DNA of 64,000 nt from Rebecca billardiae RCC1528 (taxonomy: Eukaryota > Protista > Haptophyta), in NCBI GenBank assembly GCA_965240325.2, contig OZ251223.1, positions 62,001-126,000 of the forward strand, given 5' to 3'. Below the pieces are notes generated by a model, which did no database searches, was not told the DNA's origin, and saw only the letters and a list, made by a program, of their open reading frames with translations. Below, piece by piece: positions 53,141 through 56,474 of the stretch; the stretch's first letter is position 1; every line of letters begins with the position of its first letter. The position numbers and the translations under genes are program-made.

Positions 53141-53636
53141 GTGGGGTTATTGGTACAATATATAACTGATTGTCGTCTAAGAGGACGACAAGAACGCCGG
53201 GCGCCAGCGCCGCTCATCAGCCACATCGCCCTCTACCAGGCCATCGCCTCAAAGGGCGCTGCTCCCGGACAAACAGTCTGTCCGGGTTGTTCTTTCTGCC
53301 GCCCAGGAGATCGGTTTCCGGCGCCGGCCTCTGCCGCCTGCTTCGCCAGGCGCGGCGTGCGAGATGGCTCCAGCCAAGCTCGTCCTGCGTCGCCGGCGGC
53401 GGCGGCTCGCACGCGGGTGGCGCGTCGCGTGCACCGACCAACATCTTTCGGCGTCGACGGCGAGCGGCATGCCCACCGCATCTGCTGCCGCTCGCCAAGG
53501 CATGAGGACACGTAAATCCCACTGTTTTAGGCGGAACACACGCAGCCGCCTCGGCATCGACATGCCAGGCGGCGTGCCCACCTTCGGGCTTCGGCCAGCA
53601 GTTGGCGTCGGCGTTCGCGATAAGGACTGGCTAGAC
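53141..53636. mobile_element. (TA)n-associated element, family X, diverged short member Y
   Basis: Ends GTGGGGTTAT...ATAACTGA and TGGCTAGAC match family X ends. Sub-terminal IR GAACGCCG / CGGCGTTC. Confidence 0.6.
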
Positions 53637-53830
53637 ATATATATATATATATATATATATATATATATATATATATATATATATATATATATATATATAT
53701 ATATATATATATATATATATATATATATATATATATATATATATATATATATATATATATATATATATATATATATATATATATATATATATATATATAT
53801 ATATATATATATATATATATATATATATAT
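53637..53830. repeat. (AT)n microsatellite, about 194 bp
   Basis: Read directly. Confidence 0.98.
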
Positions 53831-54700
53831 AGCCACTCCGCCATGCCCGGCTCGTACAAGGCGTCGGGTACGAATGGACTCTGGAGCTGGATGGTCGCGG
53901 CGCGCGGCGTCGTGGAGTAGACAGACCACAATGATCAATCATGGAACGATCAGGTTAGCTATGTTGGGATTTGAGCAACGAACGACAGCGGGCGCTGGCA
54001 GCGGCGTGGCGGTTGAGCTGCTGCCCGAGGTCGAGAGGGCGCCCGCGAGTCCCGTTTATAAGTTGGAGCGGGCGTCCAAGTAGTCGTTGATGAATCCCGT
54101 TTAGAAATAGAAGAGACGAGGATTCTGCGCGGCCGCGCGCGCACGATCGATCGCGACGCGCGGCGAGCAGACACGCGTCAGAGTGCGCCGCACCCGCGCG
54201 ACGCACGGGCGCGAGGCGAGCGCGTATCTCAAACGATGAAGCGTGCGGGTTGACGCGACAGCGGCGAGAGCAAGAGACCATTGCATGAGGGGCGACGCGG
54301 CGAAGACAGATGATGACGTCGCGCCGCCGAACGATCAGGCGGGGAGCCGGGCCACACAGACAGCCAGCGACCTTACCGAGCAGAGGGGCTGCGGCGACTG
54401 CGGTGCACCTCCTGCAGCGGAGCGTGCACCCGGCAGTGCCCGATGCAGGCGATTCCCTTGCCCAGCTCGGCGCCTTCGTCGTGAGCAGCCCCATGGCGCC
54501 CCCGAGAGTGAAGCCTGATCGATCCGATGTGAGCGGTAACCAACCGAGTCCTGCAGGTGCGCCGCTGTGGGCCAGATTGGCAGCGCACCAGGACTCCGCC
54601 TGCGCGCGGCGGTGCGCACAGGACAACGCAGGAATGCCGTGCGAGCCGGATTCTTGGCGTCGCTCATAGACACTCAGTTATAGGTTCCCTATAACGCCAC
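53831..54700 (-). mobile_element. Family X element, inverted copy (left arm of the palindrome)
   Basis: Reverse complement of 54707-55580 with scattered differences. Confidence 0.8.
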
Positions 54701-54706
54701 ATATAT

Positions 54707-55580
54707 GTGGCGTTATAGGGAACCTATAACTGAGTGTCTATGAGCGACGCCAAGAATCCGGCTCGCACGGCATTCCTGCGTTGTCCCGCGCGCACCGCCG
54801 CGCGCAGGAGTCCTGGTGCGCTGCCAATCTGGCCCACAGCGGCGCACCTGCAGGACTCGGTTGGTTACCGCTCACATCGGATCGATCAGGCTTCGCTCTC
54901 GGGGGCGCCATGGGGCTGCTCGCGACGAAGGCGCCGAGCTGGGCAAGGGAATCGCCTGCATCGAGCACTGCCGGGTGCACTCTCCGCTGCAGGAGGTGCA
55001 CCGCAGTCGCCGCAGCCCCTCTGCTCGGTAAGGTCGCTGGCTGTCTGTGTGGCCCGGCTCCCCGCCTGATCGTTCGGCGGCGCGACGACATCATCTACTG
55101 TCTTCGCCGCGTCGCCCCTCATGCAATATGGTCTCTTGCTCTCGCCGCTGTCGCGTCAACCCGCACGCTTCATCGTTTGAGATACGCGCTCGCCTCGCGC
55201 CCGTGCGTCGCGCGGGTGCGGCGCACTCTGACGCGTGTCTGCTCGCCGCGCGTCGCGATCGATCGTGCGCGCGCGGCCGCGCAGTCCTCGTCTCTTCTAT
55301 TTCTAAACGGGATTCATCAACGACTACTTGGACGCCCGCTCCAACTTATAAACGGGACTCGCGGGCGCCCTCTCGACCTCGGGCAGCAGCTCAACCGCCA
55401 CGCCGCTGCCAGCGCCCGCTGTCGTTCGTTGCTCAAATCCCAACATAGCTAACCTGATCGTTCCATGATTGATCATCGTGGTCTGTCTACTCCACGACGC
55501 CGCGCGCCGCGACCATCCAGCTCCAGAGTCCATTCGTACCCGACGCCTTGTGCGAGCCGGGCATGGCGGAGTGGCTAGAC
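54707..55580 (+). mobile_element. Family X element, 874 bp
   Basis: Begins GTGGC-GTTATAGG-GAA-CCTATAAC (hairpin) and ends GGAGTGGCTAGAC. Sub-terminal IR CCGGCTCGCAC (54758) / GTGCGAGCCGG (55550). Confidence 0.8.
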
Positions 55581-56370
55581 GTGGCGTTATAGGGAACCTA
55601 TAACTGAGTGTCTATGAGCGACGCCAAGAATCCGGCTCGCACGGCATTCCTGCGTTGTCCCGCGCGCACCGCCGCGCGCAGGAGTCCTGGTGCGCTGCCA
55701 ATCTGGCCCACAGCGGCGCACCTGCAGGACTCGGTTGGTTACCGCTCACATCGGATCGATCAGGCTTCGCTCTCGGGGGCGCCATGGGGCTGCTCGCGAC
55801 GAAGGCGCCGAGCTGGGCAAGGGAATCGCCTGCATCGAGCACTGCCGGGTGCACTCTCCGCTGCAGGAGGTGCACCGCAGTCGCCGCAGCCCCTCTGCTC
55901 GGTAAGGTCGCTGGCTGTCTGTGTGGCCCGGCTCCCCGCCTGATCGTTCGGCGGCGCGACGACATCATCTACTGTCTTCGCCGCGTCGCCCCTCATGCAA
56001 TATGGTCTCTTGCTCTCGCCGCTGTCGCGTCAACCCGCACGCTTCATCGTTTGCCCGCCCGCCCACCCTCGGCCTCTGGCGGATATGGAAGCACTGCAGC
56101 AGTCAGCGAGCCATCAGCCCTAATCGACCTTGCTCAGTGACTGACGACTCGCGGGCGCCCTCTCGACCTCGGGCAGCAGCTCAACCGCCACGCCGCTGCC
56201 AGCGCCCGCTGTCGTTCGTTGCTCAAATCCCAACATAGCTAACCTGATCGTTCCATGATTGATCATCGTGGTCTGTCTACTCCACGACGCCGCGCGCCGC
56301 GACCATCCAGCTCCAGAGTCCATTCGTACCCGACGCCTTGTGCGAGCCGGGCATGGCGGAGTGGCTAGAC
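55581..56370 (+). mobile_element. Family X element, head-to-tail copy with an internal replacement (about 56054-56146)
   Basis: Starts immediately after the previous copy (CTAGAC|GTGGCG) and is followed by (AT)n. Confidence 0.8.
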
Positions 56371-56474
56371 ATATATATATATATATATATATATATATAT
56401 ATATATATATATATATATATATATATATATATATATATATATATATATATATATATATATATATATATATATAT
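56371..56474. repeat. (AT)n microsatellite, about 104 bp
   Basis: Read directly. Confidence 0.98.

Follow-up and report, generated by a model that had tools for sequence, protein, structure and literature searches.

Protein-less (TA)n-targeting elements in the haptophyte Rebecca billardiae: probable non-autonomous members of the tyrosine-recombinase retrotransposons with a covarying end junction

The locus analyzed here lies in the haptophyte Rebecca billardiae RCC1528, within a 64,000-bp stretch of contig OZ251223.1 (assembly GCA_965240325.2, positions 62,001 to 126,000 of the forward strand, denoted G000:C3:62001-126000), which we refer to as the window. In this very GC-rich genome (72 Mb in 41 contigs, about 70% G+C), a single (TA)n microsatellite at 53.1-56.5 kb of the window received the four copies treated here of one family of protein-less elements, named X. 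This raises the question of what kind of mobile element X is, and how elements that encode no protein have their ends joined and are delivered to one simple target. An earlier note on this DNA had described four members with common ends and had suggested a mechanism of the single-stranded DNA or rolling-circle type. The four copies are present exactly as described, with shared GTGG(C/G)GTTAT...AGAC ends. The mechanism suggested for them is not borne out: as argued below, X elements are probably non-autonomous members of the DIRS-order (Ngaro/VIPER-like) retrotransposons, which use a tyrosine recombinase.

The exact ends of the members in the window are 5' GTGG(C/G)GTTAT...ATAAC and 3' ...GGCTAGAC, and the end hairpin reported previously is indeed there as GTTATAGG-GAA-CCTATAAC. 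Two of the four copies, units C (54707-55580, 874 bp) and D (55581-56370, 790 bp), lie head-to-tail on the plus strand, and D consists of positions 1-473 and 650-874 of C at 100% identity, with a different middle of 92 bp. C and D are one split-repeat element, A1-x-B1|A2-y-B2, and not two, which is the point on which the count of four members has to be revised. Its A1 repeat (54707..55179) holds the 5' signature GTGGCGTTAT, the hairpin near the 5' end (54712-54730) and the 5' arm of a long-range inverted repeat (54758-54768). It is followed by the middle piece x (55180..55355, 176 bp), a miniature 'body' present in C and absent from D, and by the B1 repeat (55356..55580), which terminates in ...GGCTAGAC, contains the 3' arm of the inverted repeat (55550-55560) and is 100% identical to B2. 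Beyond the AC|GT junction (55580|55581) follow the A2 repeat (55581..56053), identical to A1, the spacer y (56054..56145, 92 bp), unrelated to x, and the B2 repeat (56146..56370), which forms the 3' end of the element and again reads ...GGCTAGAC; the remainder of the microsatellite (56371..56474) makes up the right flank. On the other side, an ATATAT spacer (54701..54706) separates the facing 5' ends of C and of element B (about 53830..54700, minus strand), a single a-type unit A-x-B of 870 bp that shows 97.8% identity to C across 870 nt and whose final three nucleotides (GAC) are either missing or ambiguous and merged into the TA run. A further (TA)n tract (53637..53829), part of the same host microsatellite, lies between B and element A (53141..53636, plus strand). 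The latter is a solo A+B unit of 496 bp of the b type, with GTTATTG-GTA-CAAT(ATAT)AAC as its hairpin; it matches the A part of the b-type split-repeat element L053 at 95.8% and its B part at 90.3% and has no middle piece.

Within the 64-kb window alone the short end motifs are statistically not significant, and the significance of the family therefore comes from genome-wide counts. The 5' signature with its hairpin was matched 538 times in the genome as compared to one control match, and at least 127 BLAST pieces of the 874-bp unit are spread over many contigs. Directly upstream of the signature stands ATAT in 329 of the 538 matches and AC in 153, the AC cases being seamless head-to-tail junctions; of the 385 5' ends that are not junctions, 329 (85%) thus have ATAT in front of them, whereas the genome as a whole is about 70% G+C. 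The flanks are nearly always ...ATAT|GTGG...AGAC|ATAT..., also at TA runs of 2-3 units (30 loci), so that the insertion pattern is AT|G...C|AT, with an element starting with G and a target T|A. These data confirm X as a real and abundant family of protein-less mobile elements that land precisely in (TA)n. The TA run beside the 5' end is typically 5-6 nt long (median 6) and the one beside the 3' end longer (median 12; paired test, p = 0.03, n = 22 independent insertions), which may reflect either insertion near one edge of the tract or later growth of the 3' tract.

This asymmetry between the right and the left TA run, together with copies that begin near unit position 140-190 and could represent 5' truncations, would also be compatible with a passenger resembling a short interspersed element, inserted by target-primed reverse transcription with the machinery of a (TA)n-seeking long interspersed element (LINE). 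We regard this explanation as extremely improbable. The exact complete 5' end is present in hundreds of copies and is the most conserved part of the element, whereas the 3' ends vary between subfamilies; moreover, the junctions between units are seamless and no tail intervenes. The ends are furthermore those of elements encoding reverse transcriptase (RT), RNase H (RH) and tyrosine recombinase (YR), described below, and not of a LINE, although a LINE itself was not compared.

The split direct repeats A1-x-B1|A2-y-B2 are the common layout of non-coding and coding members alike and were recovered in a-type (C+D), b-type (L053), c-type (L050, L052) and d-type (L054, L056) elements. In the a-type element of the window, A1, x, B1, A2, y and B2 measure 473, 176, 225, 473, 92 and 225 bp and the repeats are 99-100% identical, while in the b-type L053 the corresponding lengths are 304, 519, 194, 304, 229 and 194 bp with repeats at 100%. 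The c-type L050 has an A1 of 451 bp, a body of 6852 bp, B1 of 248 bp, A2 of 459 bp, y of 103 bp and B2 of 248 bp (repeats 98-99.6% identical), and the d-type L054 has an A1 of 623 bp, a middle of about 0, B1 of 141 bp, A2 of 598 bp, y of 106 bp and B2 of 150 bp (92-95%). The spacer y thus spans 92-229 bp, and its presence departs from the A1-body-B1A2B2 layout of Ngaro/VIPER/PAT type. Short c-type copies consisting of A+B only were found as well (L045 and L048). Where arrays could be resolved, they have the form [A-x-B]n followed by one shorter y-type unit, with the exception of one locus with two y units. Another split-repeat element, with 300-bp repeats 3919 bp apart and 99% identical, is located in the window at 14850-19321; it has an internal ATGATCGGCGC satellite, does not show the X end signature and has no TA run flanking its 5' end.

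The two repeats of an element evolve in concert. Among 15 independent a-type elements, A1 and A2 of the same element differ by a mean of 0.67 positions per 460 nt and are identical in 11 of the 15 pairs, whereas A repeats of different a-type elements differ by a mean of 10.06 per 460 nt; 22 variable columns are concerted, both repeats of every element agreeing there, and not a single column is fixed-different between A1 and A2. This within-element identity suggests that both repeats are copied from one template in each cycle, as is the case for long terminal repeats (LTRs). Template switching by an RT on a transcript containing the B1|A2 junction would explain both the concerted repeats and the arrays in which x comes first and y last. 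Alternatively, X might be mobilized at the DNA level in the manner of Cryptons, a recombinase excising double-stranded circles and re-inserting them without any RNA or RT step. Integration of circles at an end already in place could create arrays with AC|GT junctions, the near-palindromic junction could be bound by a recombinase, and transcripts that would document an RNA route have not been observed. However, differences between A1 and A2 would be inherited separately in a dimer moved as DNA, whereas A1=A2 and B1=B2 are concerted with no fixed differences, which argues for one template per cycle. Furthermore, the constant order of units is what RT template switching predicts, while excision and re-insertion would also permute them, and the RT-RH of the coding relatives is under coding constraint, with a G+C content at third codon positions (GC3) of 0.88-0.93. 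A DNA-only route is therefore considered unlikely.

The coding relatives emerged when outer ends and internal AC|GTGG junctions were compared by position, which yielded units of 4.6-7.8 kb. These long elements possess the 5' signature of X, a 3' end in ...AC, the seamless AC|GT junction and TA flanks, and their genes run in the GTGG-to-AC orientation. In the c-type L050 (C3:1979001-1988200, minus strand), a TA run is followed by A1, the 6.85-kb body, B1, the junction GGACAC|GTGGCG, A2, y, B2 and a second TA run, with A2 98% identical to A1 and B2 99.6% identical to B1. Its body comprises two frames with strong coding bias (GC3 0.87-0.93), namely open reading frame (ORF) 1 and an RT-RH frame in which RT motifs and the RNase H motif DAS...NxxADAASR were recognized by eye. 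The long ORFs of L050 and L051 gave no Pfam match at E<=0.01 and only spurious ones at E<=10. L051 (G000:C5:2349001-2355250), of the c' type, has a unit of 4.65 kb and is represented by at least three copies in the genome; apart from its long open frames without Pfam match, it carries an array of 110-bp tandem repeats.

Assignment of the second frame of L050 came from remote homologues and from structure prediction. A profile of the RT-RH module retrieved at least 2831 proteins at E<=1e-3 in an exhaustive search of a library of 1.8 billion proteins, and an AlphaFold model built on a 52-homologue alignment reached a pLDDT (predicted local distance difference test) of 91.7. In a Foldseek comparison with the PDB, all 50 matches listed were RTs, with E-values down to 4e-13, from Moloney murine leukemia virus (MMLV), human endogenous retrovirus K (HERV-K), HIV-1, cauliflower mosaic virus (CaMV) and foamy virus; the top matches were RTs of retroviral or LTR type, and the RNase H part was included. 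By contrast, PDB searches at the sequence level with the single RT-RH and with four- and 52-sequence profiles found no RT. Among the 52 RT-RH members scanned, RVT_1 was the only Pfam family matched, in five of the 52 and weakly (best E 6.5e-6), and the clade is practically invisible to routine annotation. On the strength of the modeled structure and the motifs, the long c- and d-type relatives encode an RT with RNase H. Two distant homologues of this clade, P0006 and P0012, additionally begin with a domain of the C-5 cytosine DNA methylase family at the N-terminus (E 1e-11 to 1e-12), which in P0012 is combined with a C-terminal recombinase; domain scans of L056 and L052 did not reveal a methyltransferase domain.

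The best candidate for a helper is the d-type element L056 (G000:C33, minus strand, 5.65 kb), which is inserted in a TA run with the layout TA-run|GTGGCGTTAT-hairpin ... GGACAC|GTGGCG ... GGACAC(AC)n and TA run again. Its A1 and A2 are 100% identical, and one open, apparently intact frame of 1317 aa holds both RT-RH and recombinase: residues 44-727 align with the RT-RH module of P0009 at 35% identity (E 2e-102), and residues 1188-1275 match Pfam Phage_integrase at E 4e-5 (23.9 bits), under the cut-off. Some 0.8 kb downstream of L056, a 100-bp TA run holds the start of an a-type element (rc 9679, G000:C33, about 126322); this variant has CGAGTGTCTA after the hairpin and is intermediate between a and c/d types. 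Genome-wide, five loci have weak Phage_integrase matches, and two of the five lie about 1.5 kb upstream of c-type junctions; matches of the long elements at E 1.5e-5 and 4e-5 are just under the Pfam cut-off. In L052 the recombinase is located 1.3 kb upstream of B1|A2, followed by y-B2 and a TA run, and its motifs GALRKAE...K...HSFRIG...WRS...Y correspond to the catalytic R...K...HxxR...W...Y of YRs. A PDB search with the single recombinase sequence returned nothing useful, while a six-homologue profile matched only YRs (Gp33 integrase, Cre, XerD, XerA), weakly and with a best E of 0.0036. Phage_integrase furthermore follows the RT-RH module in five of ten long homologues, in two of them above the cut-off, and no DDE integrase domain was seen in the ORFs scanned. 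As judged from motifs and profiles, the long relatives thus encode a YR and not a DDE integrase.

These coding capacities bear directly on the rolling-circle explanation, in which X would be a Helitron2/Helentron-like DNA transposon and the tandem arrays would stem from rolling-circle replication. X does resemble such elements in layout: viewed from the opposite strand, it carries a terminal inverted repeat at its 5' end, the second arm of which directly precedes a hairpin near the 3' end, and it closes with a short tail. In Helitron2, comparably, the distance of the 5' repeat to the terminus is 0-2 bp, and the 3' repeat precedes a hairpin that is 20-30 bp away from the terminus (PMC3627910). 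X also shows no obvious target-site duplication, its tandem junctions are seamless, and true Helitron2-like families adjoin it in the window. Nevertheless, we judge a rolling-circle origin to be very unlikely. The earlier note had advised searching for the longest members and the enzyme they encode; enzymes were identified, but in place of an HUH Rep/Hel protein the long elements with X ends encode RT-RH and YR. All loci matching Helitron_like_N and PIF1 were searched for a Helitron partner, with ends taken from copy boundaries and flanks: Helitron_like_N occurs at only five loci genome-wide, which represent two families, none with X ends or TA flanks. The copies of a 12.4-kb Helitron family ending in TGACGCAC...ATCGATCA are inserted in unrelated non-TA sites, and the copy on C39 has neither an X end nor a TA run within 20 kb. 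The Y1 HUH transposase family Y1_Tnp of Pfam has no match in this genome and has matches in six of 14 control genomes; TnpB/Fanzor was not searched for. Moreover, the units of an X array differ in their middles (x versus y) while their A repeats are identical, whereas concatemers would be uniform, and X starts with G and not T and inserts at T|A and not T|T (PMC11417382).

At 50200-53108 of the window, two adjacent non-coding Helitron2-like elements with the 5' end TGGCCCGCGGTG occupy AT-rich sites and have unrelated interiors; the complement CACCGCGGGCC is found about 45 nt from their 3' end and is followed by the hairpin GACCGCG-GAA-CGCGGTC-A. In family and in mechanism they are distinct from X. 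At L036+L037 (G000:C33:773001-793000), a 12.4-kb Helitron encoding Helitron_like_N and PIF1 is nested in a 1.56-kb repeat of Helitron2 type; the 5' end TGACGCAC is present in four of six copies of this Helitron, which terminates on the 3' side in a short hairpin plus CA.

How the ends of X are recognized can be approached from the joined ends, since eight natural B1|A2 junctions from four subfamilies could be aligned. All eight share AC|GTGG.GTTAT...ATAAC.GA.TGT and adopt the same fold, composed of an outer 5-bp helix, a 5x5 internal loop that contains the junction, and an inner hairpin of 7-8 bp with a GNA loop. In C+D this stem-loop occupies 55576..55614, as indicated by pair counts, minimum-free-energy folds and RNAalifold, the outer helix pairing 55576-55580 with 55610-55614 up to the edge of the internal loop in which the AC|GT junction sits, and the inner 8-bp hairpin pairing 55586-55593 with 55597-55604 around a GAA loop. 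Across the alignment the fold is 100% paired, with 13 of 13 pairs kept and five of the 13 changed on both sides, and the stem variants AGG/CCT, TG/CA, AAC/GTT and AGC/GCT are all perfectly compensated. The covariation score of 0.366 compares with 0.121 in shuffles, none of 500 of which reached 0.366, and with at most 0.081 for slid partners; the junctions represent about four independent lineages, so these statistics are indicative. Both helices were recovered independently by single-sequence minimum-free-energy folds and by RNAalifold.

A long-range inverted repeat extends the junction fold in the a and b types. In the 874-bp type it is an 11-mer whose arms occupy 5' positions 52-62 and 3' distance 21-31. 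The 496-bp member has an 8-mer of different sequence instead, at 52-59 and 21-28, and a third variant, TGCGCC/GGCGCA, is located at 53-58 and 23-28 in another b-type copy. Its placement about 50 and 20 bp from the two ends, and the change of sequence at the same positions in the 496-bp member, had been noticed from the window alone and were taken as a sign of pairing conserved despite sequence change. That idea holds for the junction stem-loop with its five covarying pairs and does not extend to the long-range repeat in the c and d types, where it is not found at the same positions; it is likewise absent from the RNAalifold consensus.

A conserved fold placed exactly at the unit boundary of head-to-tail arrays might also be expected of a self-cleaving ribozyme of the HDV (hepatitis delta virus), hammerhead or a comparable kind, with AC|GT as the site at which tandem transcripts would be processed. 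We give this hardly any credence, given that no Rfam ribozyme matched at E<=10, only spurious AT-rich matches being obtained, that the fold is a simple two-helix stem-loop, and that the conserved CTGAGTG, on our reading of the sequence, does not fit a hammerhead core. Most likely, the covarying stem-loop of the joined ends is a cis signal that is read as a structure, either in end joining, in recognition by the recombinase, or in both. A more specific proposal, which we put forward tentatively and regard as less likely than not, is that single-stranded cDNA folds into the B|A stem-loop, is recognized by its shape by the YR and is then recombined with (TA)n. Recognition of a folded strand would explain the flush junction without a core, the covariation, and the mobilization of otherwise unrelated non-coding passengers that share only about 35 bases with the coding elements. 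(TA)n itself readily extrudes hairpins. A junction strand read by shape would liken X to integron attC sites and CTX phage DNA. Such recognition is plausible because DIRS-1 cannot do without its internal copy of the junction, and most of its intermediates are single-stranded cDNA (PMC7192593). If true, this would be the first case of a eukaryotic retrotransposon whose recombination site is read by structure.

Taken together, the protein-less and the coding elements have their ends, junction fold, architecture and target in common, and the following cycle is proposed for X as non-autonomous DIRS-order elements. Autonomous relatives with the X end signature would supply RT-RNase H and YR in trans. 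A transcript that does not contain the extreme ends and retains the internal B1|A2 junction would be reverse transcribed, and switching of the template from one A copy to the other, and likewise from B copy to B copy, would regenerate both repeats, with extra switches giving rise to the arrays [A-x-B]n[A-y-B]. Finally, the ends would be joined B-to-A and the recombinase would insert the product flush at a T|A step within a TA run, with no target-site duplication. The Ngaro/VIPER-like placement is by architecture and encoded domains.

Several points weigh against this reading. The recombinase matches are individually weak, below the Pfam cut-off in this genome and at E 0.004 or worse in the PDB, and coding capacity was observed in neither the a nor the b type. 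What connects these types to the coding c and d types is about 35 terminal bases, together with the ...AC end, the junction fold and a common architecture and target, and does not include any longer homology. For the short elements an RNA intermediate is inferred. Textbook Ngaro elements have no y spacer between A2 and B2, and a flush junction with no core common to AC|GT and AT|AT is unusual for a YR. Moreover, a 2-bp AT duplication on insertion may occur.

Among known systems, SIRE/VIPER of Trypanosoma cruzi comes closest to X. The split direct repeats of VIPER are arranged as A1...B1A2B2 and can be 100% identical; the proteins that VIPER encodes are a Gag-like one, a YR and an RT/RH. SIRE is made up of the A2 and B2 repeats of VIPER around a short internal region of its own of about 30 bp (PMC6681497). 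The layout of SIRE matches A-y-B of X; the likeness is one of layout, and the host of X is a GC-rich alga and not a kinetoplastid. In contrast to SIRE, short X elements can also have the complete A1-x-B1|A2-y-B2 structure or be arranged in arrays, are located almost only in (TA)n, and form a covarying stem-loop from their joined ends. Similarly, Ngaro of Cafeteria burkhardae is arranged as A1-[ORFs]-B1A2B2 with RT/RH preceding YR, and isolated AB repeats are scattered in that genome (PMC8547959). Split direct repeats, the order of RT/RH and YR, and isolated AB repeats are thus shared by X and Ngaro elements (e.g., of Cafeteria burkhardae and zebrafish), whereas the X group has the y spacer, RT-RH and YR in one frame in L056, and an RT so divergent that it is missed by Pfam RVT_1. 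The integration preference of the Cafeteria Ngaro is tied to ORF1, and the word 'hairpin' does not appear in the text of that report (PMC8547959). In a limited literature search, neither (TA)n specificity nor a conserved junction hairpin was found for Ngaro, nor any report of TA-microsatellite targeting for tyrosine-recombinase retroelements. As far as that search goes, the strict (TA)n targeting and the covarying junction fold of X are new.

DIRS-1 of Dictyostelium, for which a self-complementary circle junction has been proposed (PMC7192593), resembles X as a YR retrotransposon with an essential internal copy of the end junction (ICR). It differs from X in having inverted terminal repeats and the ICR instead of split direct repeats, in inserting into other DIRS-1 copies, and in the trinucleotide proposed to be common to junction and target, X junction and target having no common core. 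Compensatory changes in end structures are also on record for Helitron2/Helentron HINEs and DINE-1 (PMC3627910, PMC5148889). Like X, these elements have a hairpin close to one end, connect both ends through a short inverted repeat, form tandem arrays and lack a target-site duplication; unlike X, they are moved by a RepHel protein, have T as their first base and go in between two Ts (PMC11417382). Finally, MuTAnT and certain other plant DNA transposons strongly prefer TA microsatellites and form nested arrays there (PMC4486113, PMC5907723). They are Mutator-like or miniature inverted-repeat (MITE) cut-and-paste elements with terminal inverted repeats and target-site duplications, and retroelements are not among them.

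Two further features of the window stand apart from X. Interstitial telomere-like repeats, 5.5 units of AGGGTT (TTAGGG), are located at 45758-45790, and 6006-8935, in a very GC-rich stretch, contains three blocks of tandem repeats of about 180 bp (94-97% matches in two blocks, 89% in the third), which would encode a repeat protein rich in Gly, Pro, Ser and Met.

YR retrotransposons are the least understood order of retroelements, and their end joining and target choice are still largely a model (PMC7192593). Rebecca billardiae offers hundreds of young copies in at least four subfamilies, with a defined junction, a covarying fold and one simple target, so that end recognition and target choice are directly testable with oligonucleotides and one protein of 1317 aa. 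The several hundred signature copies as compared to five recombinase loci indicate, moreover, that SIRE-like gene-less derivatives can greatly outnumber their coding relatives. X furthermore provides an annotation rule for elements of this kind, which automated pipelines are likely to label as Helitrons, satellites or unknown repeats.

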